Source: Oculina patagonica (taxonomy: Eukaryota). From it: 64,000 nucleotides of DNA. The stretch lies in NCBI RefSeq assembly GCF_052425735.1, contig NC_135761.1, forward strand, positions 11,656,001 to 11,720,000, given 5' to 3'. A model generated the notes under the pieces. That model was not told where the DNA came from. It was given only the letters and a program-made list of their open reading frames with translations, and made no database searches. Below are positions 10,899 to 59,339 of this stretch, one piece after another; the first letter of the stretch is position 1; every line of letters starts with the position of its first letter. Both the position numbers and the translations under genes were made by a program.

Positions 10899-12678
10899 AA
10901 CTGCGACTCTTTAACGACACAAAAAGCACCAAACTTAACTTGACGCCAATTTGCCATGATGACTTCATGTCGTTATTACTTCATATAACAGATGCTTACG
11001 CTACCGTATGACACATTCTTTGTACTTTTTAACGTGTCAAAAAAGTTAGTTATTCAATGTTTCGAATAAATTAACTCGATGCTATAACTGGGACTGAGTA
11101 CTTCTCTATGACAAAATAAAATGTCGTAAGTAAATAATTGTTTAATTCTTTTTTAATTCGATAAAATGTTTAGCCTGAAACATAAACTGAAGCTTTTATT
11201 TTATATTTTCAATTCCCGTTTCTAGATATCTGTTGCTTCTCAACTGAAAGCATATTGACTATCATTATTATTTCAAATACTGGGCTTGCAGTAAATTTAG
11301 AGGACAACAAATTAACATGTTCCTTTATGCTATGCCATAGCATTTCAGTTTTCCCAGTGAGTGGTAACCATACTGGTTGCTACTGCTCGTATCGCCAAAC
11401 CTCAGCTGTTTAACTGGCAGATGTGTCTTGTCAGTGAGGAGACCGCTGTCTTCACGCCATACATAGTCATTTGCATCACAGTTACAGCCATAACTGGGGT
11501 TTGCGCATGAGTTAGTCATCCCGCATGCGCACTTACCACTGCCAGGTGATGCTCCGCCCCAGTACGTCATCTTAGTAGAATCACGTGACACCCACCAGGC
11601 ATTTACCCCGTACCCCCAACATCACAGAACCATGACACTCGTACTTGATAAACTGTTCACAGTGCGAGGAGACTCTGGTGAGACTTGCAAGCTGGGAAAG
11701 ACTTGATCCTGTATAATGGATGTCACGAGAGTAACAGCCTTGATGTTGACATCCATCCACCAATGTTCTGCTTTCACTGCCGTGACTTATCACTGTCACG
11801 CCGATTCCATTCTTGTCACTCATGTCACAGTAAACAGTAAATGGTGCCAGGCTTCCCGCGCCATCTGGATCAATGACGTAATTCCCGCTTACACTACAAA
11901 CGTATTTTCTTATCACAGAGCAGGAAGTCGTAATAACTGGAGAATTGATTTTGACTTTAGCTTCTATTAACACCAGAGGATTAGTCGCCCTACAGGTGTA
12001 AGATCCTTCGTGTGATTTCTTGATGTTCTGAATAAACAGTGTTCCATTAAGTAGAACATTGGACTCTACAGGAAGTGAAGACTTGCTATCCTTGAACCGC
12101 AGTGGAGAGAATATTACAACTAGGGCAGTGTTCGTAGCTGATCCCATAATATTCTCTGTCTTACAAATGTATATTCCAGCGTCCTTTCTTGTCACGCTGT
12201 AGATTGTCAAAATTCCATTCATCACTTCAGTTCTGTCTTTAGGCAAACTACCGACTGACTTAGTCCACGTGATACTAGGAAACGGCCTACCAGTAGCAGT
12301 GCAGGCGATGGTGACGTTTTGTTTCTCTTCAGCCATCAATCGATTGGATGACAATGAAAGTTGAGGAGGAACTGTCGAAAAATAAAGAAATTGTGATGAT
12401 TTGCCCAAACAAACTTTTGTTACATTTTATTTCCTCTGCTGTTGTAGCCTCTCTTAGACAGCCATATTCCAACTTCAAATGTTATTGGCTTATTTGTGAG
12501 AAGTAGTCAATTTAAACACAGAACTAAAGATATGTTTAGCGATGATCGAAGTTCTTCTGAAATTCCGTTTTGGTCATGTTCACATGTCACATTTTTTCAA
12601 ATATTTATCACAACTTCTTCAGCTGAACGTCAGCTATGTCAAACGCTTAATGTTTTACAATAAAATACATAAATTAAG

Positions 12679-52460: not shown

Positions 52461-52871
52461 TTTCGGTAAGCGACAAGTCTTCTTTGTTTCAGCGTGTGAT
52501 CATTAACGGGAGTTCATTCTCATAAACGAACATCTCTTACGATGGCTACGACTGCACTTCATATAACAGATGTTTACGCTTACGTATGACACATTGTATT
52601 TTTAACGTGTCAGAAAAGTCAAAGGTTTGGCTAAAATAATAAAGTGTCGTAAATGAAATTTTCCCCAGTTGTTAAATTCTTTTAAATTCGTTATTACCTT
52701 TTTGGCCAAATAAAATGTCACTAAAACTACTTTTTCTTTCAATGTTTGTGTTTTAGATTTAAATTGCCACAGACCGGGCACACAATTACTCAATTCAGCA
52801 TAGTAACGATGATAAATGTTAGAAATGCATATGCTCAGTTCGCCATAACTTAATACAAATCACGTTGCTAT

Positions 52872-55539
52872 TTAAGCTTTGCCATAACATTTCAGTTTTC
52901 CCAGTATGTGGTAACCTTGCTGGGCGCTACTATTCCATGTATCTCCAAACCTCAGCTGTTTAACTGGAAGATGTGTCTTGTCAGTGAGGAGACCGCTGTC
53001 TTCACGCCATACATAGTCATTTGCATCACAGTTACAACCATAACTGGGGTCTGCACATGAGTTGGTCATCCCGCATGCGCACTTACCACTGCCAGGTGAT
53101 GCACCGCCCCAGTACGTCATCTTACTTGAATCACGTGACACCCACCAGCCATATCCCCCGTACCTGAACATCACTGAACCAACACACTCATATTTGATAA
53201 ACTGTTCACAGTGTGAGGAGACCCTGGTGAGGCTCGCAAGCTGAGACAGACTCGCTCCTGTGTAATGAATGTCACGTGAGTAACTACCAGCACCGCTATA
53301 CCCATTTACGTGCGTTCTGCTTTCACTGTCGTGACTAATCACTGTCACGCCAACTCCATTCTTGTCACTCATGTCACAGTTAACTGTAAATGGTGCCAGG
53401 CCTTCCGCGCCATCTGGATCAATGACGTAATTTCCGCTTACACTGCTGACGTATTTTCTGATCACAGAACAGGAAGTCGCAATAACTGGAGAATTGATTT
53501 TGACTTTAGCTTTTATTGTTGTCAGAGCATTAGTCGCTCTACAGGTGTAAGATTCTTCGTGTGATTTCTTGATGTTTTTAATAACCAGTGTTCCATTTAG
53601 TAGAAAGCTGGATTCTACAGGAAGTGAAGACTTGCCATCCTTTGTCCAAGTGATTGCAGTTCTCAGGTCACTCTCGGCCACACACGGCAGATGAACACTT
53701 GAACCAATCACAGGAGTCACCTCTTGAGGAGGACGGACTTTGAACCGCAAACGAGAAAATATTATGAGTTGAACAGTGTCTGTTGCTAATCCCAAAATAT
53801 TTTCTGCTCTACAAATGTATGTTCCAGCGTCTTTTCTTGTTACACTGTAGATTGTCAGGGTTCCATTCATCACTTCAGTTCTGTCTTCAGGCAAACTACC
53901 AACTGACTTGGCCCACGTGATACTGGGAAGCGGCTGACCTGTAGCAGTGCAGGCGATGGTGACGTTTTGTTTCTCTTCAGCCATCAATCGATTGGATGAC
54001 AATGAAAGTTGAGGAGGAACTGTCGAGAAATAGAGAACAAGATCATTTGGCCAAGCGCACTATTATGTTTATTTTCCTTTTTATTCTCCTTGTTACCTTA
54101 CTTTATCAGGTGTGCTCCGACTTATGCTTTGCCCTTTAGATCAAGAGACTTCACAGTTTTTAATGTTGATCGAAATTCTTCTTAGCCTTCTTAAATTCCT
54201 TTATCGCTACAACTATAGAAACATACTAAATTGACGACTGTATCAAGAGATTTATCTTTCGAAAGGACCTGTTTGACAGGATCAACTTCTACACTTTAAA
54301 CCGCAAAATACACAAAATAAGCTACTTACACTGAACAGTTAGTCTCGCCGAGGCATTTACTTTTCCCAATAAATTTTCAGCTCTGCAGCTGTAAACGCCG
54401 TTGTCTCCAGGTCTAACGTCCTTCACAATCAGAGCGCCACTGGACTCTACCACGTGACGACCCACAGGAAGCGACGAATTAAACTTAGACCACGTGACTT
54501 TTGGACTTGGATTACCATCTACTGTACATTTCAAGATGGCTGTCTGACTTTCATTAACTGTCATTTCAACAGGGCGCTGCAGCAGAGATGGAGCCGAGAT
54601 GGACTGGCCCGGTTCACCTTTGAAGCCTTTCATACCCGGCGGGCCTCTAGGTCCCACGGGACCAGGATCTCCTGGCGTTCCAATATCCCCTTTTATGCCC
54701 ATCGGTCCTGGAGCTCCTATTGGTCCATGTTTACCAGGAGGTCCGCTTGATCCGGGTCTCCCAGGGGGACCTGGTTTCCCTCGGGTTCCCGGTCGTCCCC
54801 GTCGTCCCGTGTTACCTTTTGGTCCTGTGCGGCAGAGCGTGTGATCTTTAGCACAGACTTGGTTTTGCAGCAGACCAAGTTCTTGTTTGATCATTACTTG
54901 TACTTCAGAGGCTGTTAGCGTTGATTTCTGTTGGGAATCATCGGGCAAAGAACGTTCTTGTCTTGAGATGGTCTTTTCTTCTCCTGAAAAATTAGATTAA
55001 AAAATCGTAAACTGTCTAAACTGTGAATCCTGATTGTTTGACATTCGATGGTTACGAGTAAATGAGATTTCCGTTCCCATTAGATCAGGTTTCACCAACA
55101 TACCGTCACCATCGTTATTTCGTTTTTTTATTCGTATACAGAAAAATTGTAGAGAAATGGCATGTAATCTTGGGTGAAGTGTAGACGACTCGCATCACAA
55201 TAATTGGCAATAATTATCGAAGAAATTATGCTTAAATATAGTTATACTGTCTACTGTACTAAAATGGCGAAACTTACCTTTGGAGGCTTGCCAATAGCGG
55301 CCTGTAGCCATAACTTGCCATCTGCCGTAATTTTGTTGTACTTTTCGAAGGATTTCTGTCTCCATCTTATCACAGAATGTTACTGAGTGTGATATCAGTC
55401 GATGATGTTCTTGTATTCTGAGTTCCACGTGAATTAGCTCGATACAACACACAACAGACAACAGCAAGCCTGACGCGGAACACAAGCTGTTCAGTGTTTG
55501 TCTTGTGTTCGTCTGCTTCTCTTCTTTATCTTGTTTCAT
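52872..55539 (-). CDS. Array copy C7: intact type II TM collagen-3xIg-Caspr-type fibrinogen-like protein (~687 aa)
   Basis: Exons 55278-55539, 54330-54983 and 52872-54019; phase-1 GT-AG introns; 2064 nt in frame. RQER site; Ala-to-Glu change in the TM (CCIELIH). Confidence 0.85.
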
Positions 55540-56745: not shown

Positions 56746-59339
56746 TTATGCTGTGCCATAGCATTTTAGTTTTCCCAGTGTGTGGTAACCTTGCTGACCG
56801 GCATAACCAGATGCATCCCCAAACCTCAGCTGTTTAACTGGAAGATGTGTCTTGTCAGTAAGGAGACCGCTGTCTTCGCGCCATACATTGTCATTCTTAT
56901 CACAGTTGCAACCATACCTGGAGTCTGTACATGAGTTGGTCATCCCGCATGCGCACTTACCACTGCCAGGTGTTGCTCCGCCCCAGTACGTCATCTTACT
57001 AGAATCACGTGACACCCACCATGCTTTCGCTCCATTGAATATTCTTGAACCATGACACTCATACTTGATAAACTGTTCACAGTGTGAGGAGACTCTGGTG
57101 AGCCTTGCAAGCTGAGATAGACTCGCTCCTGTGTAATGAATGTCACGAGAGTAACTACCAGCACCGCTATACCCATCCACGTGCGTTCTGCTTTCACTGT
57201 CGTGACTAATCACTGTCACGCCAACTCCACTCTTGTCACTCATGTCACAATAAACTGTAAATGGTGCCAGGCCTCCCGCGCCATCTGGATCAATGACGTA
57301 ATTTCCGCTTACACCGCTAACGTATTTTCTTATCACGGTACAGGAAGTCATAATAACTGGAGTATTGATTTTGACTTTAGCTTCTATTGACACCAGAGGA
57401 TTAGTCGCTCTACAGGTGTAAGATCCTTCGTGTGATTTCTTGATGTTCTGAATAAACAGTGTTCCATTCAGTAGAACATTGGACTCTACAGGAAGTGAAG
57501 ACTTGCCATCCTTTGACCAAGCGATTGTAGGTTTCAGGTCACTCTCGGCCACACACGGCAGATGAACACTTGAACCAATCACAGGAGTCACTTCTTGAGG
57601 AGGACGGACTTTGAACCCTAAGCGAGAGAATATCATGACCAGAGCAGTGTCTGTTGCTACTCCAAGAGTATTCTCTGCCTTACAGATATATATTCCACCG
57701 TCCTTTCTTGTCACACTGTAGATTGTCAGGGTTCCATTCATCACTTCAGTTCTGTCTTCAGGCAAACTACCGACTGACTTAGTCCACGTGACACTAGGAC
57801 GCGGCTGACCAGTAGCAATGCAGGCGATGGTGACGTTTTGTTTCTCTTCAGCCATCAATCGATTTTTGAATGAAAGTTGAGGAGGAACTGTCGAAAAATA
57901 AAGAAATTGTGATGATTTGCCCAAACACTCTTTTGTTACATTTGATTTTCTCCGCTGATGTGCATAATTCCGACTTTAAATGTTATCGATGAGACTTAGA
58001 CAATTAGAACCCAGGACTAAACATATTTTTTGTGTTGATCGAAGTTCTTCTGAAATTTCTTTTTTGGTAATATTGTCATATCATATTTCTCAACAACTAT
58101 CATTTTTCTTTCGAAAGGGACTGTTTTATTAAAGCATACAACCTACCCCTAAACCGTTAAATACATAAATTCAGCTACCGTACTTACAATGAACAGTTAA
58201 TTTCGCCGAGGCATTCACTCGTCCCAACAAATTTTCAGCTTTGCAGCTGTAAATTCCGTCATCTCCAGGTCTAACGTCCTTCACAGTCAGAGCGCCACTG
58301 GACTCTACCACGTGACGACCCACAGGAAGTGATGAATTCATCTTAGACCACGTGACTTTTGGACTTGGATTACCATCCGCTGTACATTTCAAGATGGCTG
58401 TCTGACTTTCATTGACTGTCATTCCAACAGGACGCTGCAGCAGAGATGGAGCCGAGATGGTCTGGCCCGGTTCACCTTTGTCGCATTTCAAACCCGGCGG
58501 ACCTCTAGGTCCCACGGGACCGGGATCCCCTGGCACTCCAACATCCCCTTTCATTCCCATTGGCCCTTGAGCTCCTATTGGTCCATGTTTACCAGGAGGT
58601 CCGCTTGACCCGGGTTTCCCTGGGGTACCTGGTCTCCCTCGGGTTACCGGTCTTCCTCGTCGTCCCGCGTTACCTTTTGGTCCTGTACGACAGAGCGTGT
58701 GATCTTTAGCACAGACTTGGTTTTGCAGCAGACCAAGTTCTTGTTTGATCAGTATTTGTACTTCAGAGGCTGTTAGGGTTGATTTTTGTTCTGAATCTTC
58801 AGGTGAAGAGCGCTTTTGTCTTGAATTTTTTTCTTCTCCACCTGAAAAATTAGAGCCAATTATTCAAAATCGTAAACCATGAACCATTCTTTGACAATTA
58901 ACGGTTGCTATGATGCAATAATACAACCTGGATTCAGCAACACAGCTTCAGCCCCCTTATTTCGCATTCATTTGTTTCGGGGATACTAAAGATAAATAGC
59001 AGGCACCCTGAGTAAAGACGACGAGCAAAACGCACAACATTTTGCAATGATTACAGAAGAACGTAAACAATGCTCACCTTTGGTCCCTTTCCAATGGCGG
59101 CCTGTAGCTATAACTTGCCATCTGCCGTAATGTTGTTGTACTTTTTGAAGGATTGCTGTCTCCATCTTATCACAGAATGTTACTGAGTGTGATATCAGTC
59201 GATGATGTTCTTGTATTCTGAGTTCCACGTGAATTAGCGCGATACAACACACAACAGACAACAGCAAGCCTGACGCGGAACACAAGCTGTTCAGTGTTTG
59301 TCTTCTGTTCGTCTGCTTCTCTTCTTTATCTTGTTTCAT
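56746..59339 (-). CDS. Array copy C8: intact type II TM collagen-3xIg-Caspr-type fibrinogen-like protein (~685 aa)
   Basis: Exons 59078-59339, 58188-58841 and 56746-57887; 2058 nt in frame; RQKR site; one Gly-to-Cys change in the collagen. Confidence 0.85.

Follow-up and report, generated by a model that had tools for sequence, protein, structure and literature searches.

The window, that is, the whole 64,000-nucleotide stretch of Oculina patagonica chromosome DNA analysed here, contains nine paralogues (C1 to C9) of a single gene type, and belongs to a megabase-scale tandem array whose units measure 4–6 kb each and are 85–95% identical. Genome-wide the family comprises more than 150 paralogues, counted as copies of the head domain. 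For comparison, 71 copies were fetched from the whole genome, with the head domain intact in 59 of the 71; copies elsewhere in the genome are designated by L-numbers (L002, L004, L040 etc.). As judged from the translations, the encoded products are probable type II membrane proteins, their predicted parts being, in order, a probable signal anchor, a collagen stalk, three Ig domains and a C-terminal fibrinogen-like head of the Caspr/CNTNAP type; the predicted receptor is probably a trimer.

Coordinates given below for features of the family are positions in the window, and all of these features lie on the (-) strand. Exon 1 of C7 (55279..55539) encodes, from its translation, a short N-terminal tail followed by a hydrophobic segment of 19 residues, probably the signal anchor, with a maximum Kyte-Doolittle mean of 2.03; this segment is conserved in other copies. 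The NCBI models of the paralogues begin at an ATG downstream of the one used here for exon 1. Exon 2 (54322..54948, ends approximate) encodes collagen triple-helix repeats and the first Ig domain, as indicated by Pfam matches to Collagen (PF01391, E = 5.6e-16) and I-set. The last exon, exon 3 (52872..54002, including the stop codon), is an open frame of 376 aa that encodes two Ig domains and the fibrinogen-like head, with Ig_3 and I-set each matching twice, so that of the three Ig domains of C7 the first is encoded by exon 2 and the other two by exon 3. C7 exons 1 and 2 are overlain by contigs of RNA library X15, with no depth in the mid-intron 2 bins (54115-54316); coverage of the family's exons by RNA-library contigs applies at the level of the family rather than of each copy.

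The C7 head (52875..53465, 197 aa) yielded an AlphaFold2 model with a pLDDT of 94.5. In Pfam searches with the head domain no family passed, the best being COLFI at E = 0.11, and Fibrinogen_C (PF00147) was absent from the matches even at E <= 10; a PDB sequence search returned sub-threshold COLFI and fibrinogen matches only, and a fold search was therefore needed. Foldseek placed the model closest to the fibrinogen-like domain of CNTNAP1 (residues 596-782; TM 0.88, rmsd 1.8, 41% identity), with the procollagen C-propeptide as a more distant structural match. The coral head thus has the same fibrinogen-like fold as the Caspr/CNTNAP/Neurexin IV proteins, but the coral genes lack discoidin, laminin G and EGF domains, and their loops are hypervariable between paralogues. 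The predicted order of parts is also that of the cnidarian ficolin-like (CniFL) proteins, proposed pattern-recognition receptors in which a transmembrane segment is followed by collagen, by Ig domains (usually three) and, at the C terminus, by a fibrinogen-type domain (PMC5094078), and both the collagen (PF01391) and the three Ig domains are present in the coral family. CniFL proteins are, however, defined by Pfam Fibrinogen_C (PF00147) and number 1–7 per species (PMC5094078), whereas the coral head has no PF00147 match, is nearest to CNTNAP/Caspr and is found in more than 150 copies. The literature searched on CniFL, on coral Caspr proteins, on gene conversion in fibrinogen-related and cnidarian genes and on the Oculina patagonica genome contained no account of this family's loop variation or mosaicism.

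Hypervariable loops and tracts shared between copies

Entropy peaks over the 59 intact copies define four hypervariable loops per head. Three of them hold the patches of C7 for which a preliminary description had reported matches in other copies of the window. In C7, HV1 (53283..53315) lies between predicted strands E51-53 and E62-65 and holds patch 1; HV2 (53145..53183) lies between strands E85-95 and E107-109 and holds patch 2; and HV3 (loops 3a and 3b, 53010..53054) lies in the coil between H130-133 and E154-160 and holds patch 3. HV4 (52914..52937), recognised by its entropy peak and its indel pattern, is the loop preceding the last strand, and its 2-codon insertion in C7 is also found in C8 and, outside the window, in L003, L005 and L021. 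Nei-Gojobori dN/dS is 0.6–0.9 in the loops, where the alignment is uncertain and the estimate confounded by recombination, versus 0.13 in the framework. The head framework is under purifying selection, and the ratios show that the loops evolve under a relaxed or diversifying regime, an omega above 1 being unproven by them. Synonymous diversity of the framework between HV2 and HV4, a block at codon-alignment columns 116-180 of the head, is 0.04–0.14, compared to 0.15–0.36 elsewhere.

Each of the three patches occurs exactly twice in the window, at the places reported for it, with no occurrence expected in shuffled sequence. Extended until the first mismatch, patch 1 becomes a 28-bp tract shared with C8 (C7 53278-53305 = C8 57149-57176), patch 2 an 88-bp tract shared with C6 (C7 53094-53181 = C6 47020-47107), and patch 3 a 68-bp tract shared with C2 (C7 52969-53036 = C2 11419-11486). 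Among the 71 copies, patch 1 has its only exact match outside C7 in C8 and patch 2 in C6, and patch 3 is exact in C2 and also in L004 (C4:11606000), an intact sister copy of C2. The accompanying remarks on patch 2 also hold, in that C4 and C9 have a variant in common that C2 nearly shares, and C1 is related to C5. When the nine window copies were tested by permutation, PHI gave p = 0.0005, and the longest concordant runs gave p <= 0.001 for C6 and C7, 0.003 for C2 and C7, and 0.15 for C7 and C8.

The C6 tract and the ancestry of C7

The cleanest event of the data set is centred on patch 2, and here C6 is the recipient: it is an L040-like copy with a C7-type insert of ~160 bp. The insert occupies 47021..47179 of C6, and its template, or the copy nearest to the template, is C7 at 53095..53253 (alignment columns 258-409 in the 3SEQ-type test), 6 kb away. 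With C6 as child, L040 as major and C7 as minor parent the test gave p = 1.5e-13 (Bonferroni 3.4e-8). Inside the tract C6 agrees with C7 at 9 synonymous and 5 nonsynonymous codons and with L040 at 1; outside it, C6 agrees with L040 at 45 codons and with C7 at 2. Because the matches inside the tract include synonymous sites, the identity of C6 and C7 is not due to convergence. The C7-type tract is native to C7's relatives L002, L008 and L013, and the likeness of C7 to these three copies is what a donor left unaltered would show, the pre-conversion state being unobservable.

Trees built per segment agree with this: in the sequence flanking either end of the tract C6 belongs to the L040 clade (SH-aLRT 97 and 95), and within the tract it pairs with C7 (96). 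A C6+C7 clade is rejected by the 5' segment (AU p = 2e-5), but in the short middle segment a placement of C6 in the L040 group is not rejected (p = 0.59), so that for the C6 tract the trees are weaker evidence than the site-pattern test. These AU tests are weak, with segments of ~150–230 columns and quick searches that overlooked better trees.

False mosaics in C6 or C7 could also be produced if reads of similar paralogues were mixed during assembly or polishing, a risk in an array of such short and similar units. L024 equals L025, and L053, L054 and L055 are identical or nearly so; these could be assembly duplicates, and the public read sets take the form of short Logan unitigs (~60–400 nt), which break at every paralogue branch point and do not link the three C7 patches on one molecule. 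Against an artefact, run X1 has one unitig that extends over the C7-specific junction at 53260-53337 without mismatch and another that corresponds exactly to 53095-53181, the 87-nt C6/C7 tract, with a depth of 47x versus 20x and 26x for two unique flanking unitigs (other listed unitigs <=50x). Run X2, from a separate study, matches 52600-52967 without mismatch. Mosaicism moreover extends to over half of the copies (see below), with clean double breakpoints within otherwise diverged sequence, and we regard an artefact as extremely improbable.

The preliminary description had cast C7 as a mosaic assembled from three donors. The three tracts are real, but they do not establish C7 as a three-way recipient, the recipient of patch 2 being C6. 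For patches 1 and 3 alone, a different account would invoke common descent of C7 and C8 as tandem sisters, parallel selection, or the retention of old loop types; on balance we find it doubtful, though possible. C7 and C8 are mutually nearest across the 5' part of the head domain and across exon 3 overall, and a C8-type insert in C7 yields a 3SEQ-type p of 0.13 on an L002 backbone (L002 as major parent), so that the proposed exchange of patch 1 from C8 is inseparable from common descent. On the other side, C7 and C8 agree around HV1 at 2 synonymous and 3 nonsynonymous codons, and L002 matches at none of the synonymous sites. Patch 3 occurs with 1–2 mismatches in distant copies, including a cluster at 20.3 Mb, as it might without a separate exchange; against this, with C2 as minor parent of C7 the nominal 3SEQ-type p ranges from 7e-6 (C8 as major) to 1.6e-4 (L002 as major), and a C7+C2+L004 clade is disfavoured by the 5' segment (AU p = 0.04) and allowed by the 3' segment. 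An exchange of patch 3 into C7 thus has nominal support, which is moderate because it comes from four nonsynonymous and 0 synonymous codons.

C8 offers a larger example. Its last exon (56749..57864) is C7-like throughout, in a unit that otherwise resembles C6; in a whole-unit 3SEQ-type test with C8 as child, C6 as major and C7 as minor parent, the tract spans 52777-54049 in C7 coordinates (p = 8.5e-13). C7 may itself be a mosaic that resembles C8 around HV1, C2/L004 around HV3, C5 over most of the gene and C6/C8 in the upstream region.

Recombination across the family

Across the family there is strong support for recombination between paralogues. An exact 3SEQ-type test on 62 copies returned 219 Bonferroni-significant triplets, headed by C6 as an L040 backbone with a C7 insert, and 34 of the 62 copies were inferred to be recombinants. 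Loop distance matrices barely correlate with one another or with the framework (rho -0.07 to 0.39), and framework distance follows the physical distance between copies (rho 0.53). Seventy-seven diverged pairs of copies share exactly one loop; in these pairs framework divergence is 5.8% up to 60 nt from the shared loop and 9.2% elsewhere. Loops are shared by 7–13% of diverged pairs within 300 kb and by 2% beyond, and more often below 30 kb than in the rest (odds ratio 2.4, p = 0.008), with the qualification that the pairs in all of these family-wide counts are not independent. PHI over the 62 copies reaches modest significance (z about -2.3 to -2.8). Incompatibility is already present in about 40% of the pairs of adjacent informative sites, so that recurrent loop mutation adds noise to this statistic.

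Mosaic genes are thus present, and loops have moved between copies, in agreement with the segmental gene conversion or unequal crossover first proposed, but the exchange is not specific to loops. Tracts range from ~70 bp to more than 1 kb (~70–370 bp within the head domain), and mosaic blocks are also found in the Ig exons, intron 1, the upstream region and the whole of exon 3. The placement of breakpoints solely in the framework between loops is contradicted by the Ig exons, introns and kilobase-scale blocks, which are mosaic as well. At the level of patches, four-gamete violations number 0–1 per patch pair at three clustering thresholds in the 62 copies, a count whose power is limited by the 31–36 types per patch among these copies; loop types are therefore rarely reused in new combinations, contrary to the combinatorial loop library suggested earlier. 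The model of a freely assorting cassette library was dropped for the near-absence of loop-type reuse in these patch-level counts.

The preliminary description further suggested that damaged copies serve as donors. Lesions are indeed found in both of the copies it named: the last exon of C2 (11328..12354) is broken by a 33-codon deletion in the Ig region and an HV2 frameshift near 11617, and C6, though otherwise open, no longer has the upstream start codon in exon 1. The patch 3 tract of the broken C2 is, in addition, carried by the intact L004. A dedicated cassette system would use loops as units of exchange, with broken copies as silent donors and few expressed acceptors, perhaps in somatic cells. 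Exchange is most visible in the loops, the framework of low synonymous diversity from HV2 to HV4 could act as a homology anchor, and several window copies are damaged, all of which would suit such a system. Its donors, however, run the wrong way: in the sole event whose direction is resolved, the damaged C6 is the acceptor and its intact neighbour the donor, the reverse of the avian-Ig model. The extension of tracts beyond loops and the rarity of four-gamete violations also speak against it, every mosaic seen comes from the germline assembly, and with 59 of 71 head domains intact there is no single acceptor. We therefore consider a dedicated cassette system very unlikely.

Probable gene conversion in a putative recognition family

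The shared patches are likely to have arisen by inherited (germline) interlocus gene conversion together with unequal recombination between paralogues, with no dedicated loop-swapping system involved. By such conversion, short non-reciprocal tracts (~70–370 bp in the head) and kilobase-scale blocks would be copied, mostly within ~300 kb, and a loop lying inside a tract would travel with it. Recombination across the family is shown, as is one clean two-breakpoint tract that C7 or a C7-like copy passed to its damaged neighbour C6. The exchange events appear to belong to the germline. Interlocus gene conversion is known from tandem receptor families such as the MHC, KIR, zebrafish NLR, plant R-gene clusters and sea-urchin Sp185/333. 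The coral family resembles these in its short, probably non-reciprocal tracts, exchange among nearby paralogues, mosaic genes and reticulate phylogenies, and in its variable parts set on a conserved scaffold; it differs in its architecture (collagen stalk, 3 Ig domains, Caspr-type head), its stony-coral host and its more than 150 copies. C6 shows the two breakpoints of interlocus conversion, being L040-like on both sides and C7-like in columns 258-409, as well as synonymous identity inside the tract, which does not extend to patch 3 of C7 with its lack of synonymous matches; family-wide, the flanks of shared loops are less diverged, and exchange is commoner between close paralogues.

In avian Ig genes and in antigenic variation, short templated tracts alter the variable loops of a binding domain. 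Templated tracts in loops and broken copies inside the array are features of the coral locus as well, but the coral array has no single expressed acceptor, and the damaged C6 is a recipient. The FREPs of Biomphalaria combine IgSF and fibrinogen domains and are diversified by point mutation and gene conversion, a diversification reported to be somatic and centred on the IgSF domain. The likeness lies in a multigene family with Ig domains and a fibrinogen-type head, in which recombination among members generates diversity; the coral variation differs in being apparently germline and concentrated in the loops of the fibrinogen-like head, and the coral proteins have a collagen stalk and a probable membrane anchor in addition.

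To our knowledge corals have no antibodies, and the family bears on the question of how they discriminate symbionts, pathogens and neighbouring colonies. With more than 150 copies, a probable membrane location and four hypervariable loops per head, the family is plausibly a recognition repertoire, and new loop combinations would be expected to change binding specificity. It is conceivable, but in our estimation unlikely, that the array acts as a germline diversity generator in which the nucleotide-invariant HV2-HV4 framework anchors exchange and selection keeps new four-loop sets; if true, corals would possess a very large and recombining set of trimeric membrane receptors, comparable to the FREPs, and exchange in long-lived colonies might even be somatic. 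On the likelier reading of ordinary interlocus conversion, the redistribution of loops explains part of the origin of this diversity, and shared patches are no proof of a dedicated cassette mechanism. Ordinary gene trees are likewise untrustworthy for this coral fibrinogen-like-head family. The C7 to C6 event is clean, recent and datable, and can be followed in populations.

Architecture of the copies and extent of the family

The minus strand of the window (Oculina patagonica, chromosome piece C4:11,656,001-11,720,000) carries nine tandem copies, C1 to C9. In the C7 gene, three exons share the coding sequence. A short tail and a 19-residue hydrophobic segment, probably a signal anchor judging from its sequence, come from exon 1 (55279-55539); exon 2 (about 54322-54948) contributes the collagen repeats and a single Ig domain; two further Ig domains and a C-terminal domain of 197 residues lie in exon 3 (52872-54002). 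A Pfam search with this C-terminal head domain returned no matching family. Structurally, its AlphaFold2 model (pLDDT 94.5) aligns with the fibrinogen-like domain found in contactin-associated proteins (TM 0.88, 41% identity), the procollagen C-propeptide being a more distant structural match. The order of parts in the C7 product matches that of the cnidarian ficolin-like proteins (CniFLs; PMC5094078), but CniFLs are defined by a Pfam fibrinogen hit, which the head domain described here lacks. A literature search found no paper on loop variation or mosaicism of this head-domain family. Contigs of RNA library X15 sit on all three exons, with zero depth in the 3' flank, in mid intron 2 and in most intron 1 bins, which, for the family as a whole, shows transcription and splicing that fit the exon structure given above. 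In the NCBI models of paralogues P0002, P0005 and P0029 translation begins no earlier than a downstream ATG (METEILRK...), and neither the upstream ATG nor the hydrophobic anchor is included, yet X15 contigs extend to 55535. The Acropora cervicornis model P0001 ("Contactin-associated protein 1") is an apparent fusion of two tandem copies, Ig+head followed by Ig+Ig+head, and automatic names such as "roundabout homolog 3-like" and "contactin-associated protein 1-like" are misleading here.

Of 267 genome-wide candidates for the head domain, at least 150 were counted as copies, the majority in a cluster at C4:10.8-11.96 Mb. Further sites lie at C4:20.3 Mb, C4:59.8-60.2 Mb, C14:23-24 Mb and C13:6.4-7.1 Mb, and on chromosome pieces C6, C8 and C1. 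In many clusters the open frame spans only about 210-250 aa, suggesting that the same head domain is probably also found behind other N-terminal architectures. Head domains that are identical or nearly so, spaced 25-100 kb apart, occur in L024/L025 (C4:11054015, C4:11155121) and in L053/L054/L055 (C4:20.35-20.43 Mb); segmental duplication in the very recent past or a duplication in the assembly would each explain them.

Lesions were observed in five of the nine window copies (C1, C2, C4, C5 and C6). Exon 1 is frameshifted in C1 (5784-5894) and lacks its 3' half in C5 (44991-45158); in copy C4 (30912-31899) a deletion fuses exon 2 out of frame to mid exon 3, removing the second and third Ig domains. 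Intron 2 of C3 (23498-27269) is about 3.8 kb long, whereas its counterparts measure about 0.3 kb, which indicates an insertion of about 3.4 kb.

Variable loops in a conserved framework

Among 59 intact head domains the protein framework is almost invariant, and variation is concentrated in four hypervariable regions, HV1 to HV4 (53283-53315, 53145-53183, 53010-53054 and 52914-52937 in C7), all of which map to loops of the AlphaFold2 model. Nei-Gojobori estimates were dS 0.33, dN 0.04 and dN/dS 0.13 for the framework, and dS 0.59, dN 0.39 and dN/dS 0.67 for the loops. The excess of dS over dN in the framework indicates that it is kept by purifying selection and not by recent homogenisation. The HV2-HV4 block is exceptional (52950-53135, head-domain codon alignment columns 116-180), with a synonymous diversity at same-residue codons of 0.04-0.14 versus 0.15-0.36 elsewhere in the domain. 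Nucleotide conservation in this block exceeds what the protein requires; frequent homogenising conversion, constraint at the RNA or DNA level, and a mutation cold spot are possible causes. When all pairs of loops were compared, distance matrices were correlated for HV1-HV4 (rho 0.39), the loops most distant in sequence, and for HV2-HV3 (0.33), with no correlation for the remaining pairs; spatial contact and co-selection of loops may account for this.

Recombination among paralogues and the origin of the C7 patches

Recombination among the copies is present. In the nine window copies PHI gave p = 0.0005, and the longest concordant runs reached significance in the pairs C6-C7 (p <= 0.001) and C2-C7 (p = 0.003), though not in C7-C8 (p = 0.15). 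An exact 3SEQ-type test (maximum descent of a hypergeometric walk, exact p checked by simulation) applied to 62 genome copies yielded 219 triplets that stayed significant once corrected (Bonferroni, 226,920 triplets), and 34 of the 62 copies came out as recombinants. Seventy-seven diverged pairs share one loop only (<=6.5% nucleotide difference, the other loops being typically tens of percent apart), and their framework divergence is 5.8% within 60 nt of the shared loop versus 9.2% elsewhere. The tracts therefore extend into the flanks, as predicted by conversion and not by convergence. Correlations of loop distances, both among loops and between loops and framework, are weak (rho -0.07 to 0.39), and framework distance tracks physical distance (rho 0.53).

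Each of the three C7 strings singled out in the preliminary description has exactly two occurrences in the window, at the positions it reported; a shuffled sequence is expected to give 0 matches. Extended without mismatch, patch 1 covers 28 bp (C7 53278-53305, C8 57149-57176), patch 2 covers 88 bp (C7 53094-53181, C6 47020-47107) and patch 3 covers 68 bp (C7 52969-53036, C2 11419-11486). Such mosaics might be assembly artefacts, which is unlikely given that read unitigs agree with the assembly, although these are too short to place all three patches on a single molecule. The C6/C7 tract (53095-53181) is exactly the span of one unitig of run X1 at 47x, with two unique flanking unitigs at 20x and 26x and the other listed ones at 30x-50x; a C7-specific unitig matches 53260-53337 with 0 mismatches. 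Over 52600-52967, run X2, which comes from a different study, also matches without mismatch.

Patch 2 belongs to the strongest single event of the data set (p = 1.5e-13, corrected 3.4e-8), in which the 3SEQ-type test places C6 as child, L040 (a copy at C4:11.611 Mb) as major parent and C7 as minor parent, over alignment columns 258-409 (C6 47021-47179, C7 53095-53253). In trees of the segments on both sides of the tract, C6 falls within the L040/L041/L036/L049 clade (SH-aLRT 97 and 95), and in the 5' part it is 99% identical to L040; in the middle segment it groups with C7 (SH-aLRT 96). The AU test rejected a C6+C7 clade for the 5' segment (p = 2e-5). Inside the tract C6 agrees with C7 at 9 synonymous and 5 nonsynonymous codons and with L040 at 1, while outside it agrees with L040 at 45 codons and with C7 at 2. 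The C7 version resembles that of its relatives L002, L008 and L013 and is thus native to C7. The exchange with C6 that had been proposed for this loop is upheld, but its acquisition by C7 is not. Nor is damaged C6 the donor it was suggested to be: with an L040-type backbone and a C7-type tract it is the recipient, and since exon 1 of C6 no longer has its upstream start codon, an intact neighbour 6 kb away overwrote a damaged copy.

Patch 3 is exact in C2 and also in L004, the intact sister copy of C2. With C2 as minor parent of C7, nominal p ranged from 7e-6 (major parent C8) to 1.6e-4 (major parent L002); support comes from 4 nonsynonymous and 0 synonymous codons, and patch 3-like versions are present in distant copies. 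For patch 1, C7 and C8 are nearest relatives across the whole 5' part of the domain and for exon 3 as a block, and they agree at two synonymous sites around the patch; a separate C8-type insert in C7 was not significant (p = 0.13).

Scale of exchange and comparison with known systems

The loops had been proposed as exchange cassettes, but a sliding comparison and recombination tests of whole units show mosaics that are wider than the loops. The best match of C7 shifts along the gene, from C6 in exon 1 (0.97-0.99) to C5/C9 in intron 1 (0.96-0.98); within exon 3 the Ig part is closest first to C5 and further on to C3, and the head domain to C8, C6 and C2 in turn. At the kb scale, C8 combines a C7-like exon 3 with a unit that is otherwise C6-like (p = 8.5e-13), and C7 is C6/C8-like in its upstream part and C5-like in the remainder. 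Loop types also seldom recur in fresh combinations, as four-gamete violations number only 0-1 per patch pair with 31-36 loop types among the 62 copies, which does not bear out a combinatorial set of loop cassettes. The donor-pseudogene and single-acceptor features of avian-Ig and antigenic-variation systems were both tested for and neither was found; on these two features the array is not of that kind. Interlocus gene conversion and unequal recombination of an ordinary sort account for the mosaics of this tandem receptor array, as is known from MHC, KIR, NLR, R-gene and Sp185/333 clusters. Intron 1 exists in two sharply distinct forms (55036-55180 in C7), with C7, C5 and C9 96-98% alike and the other copies 60-83% identical to C7, indicating that breakpoints of exchange lie in introns as well.
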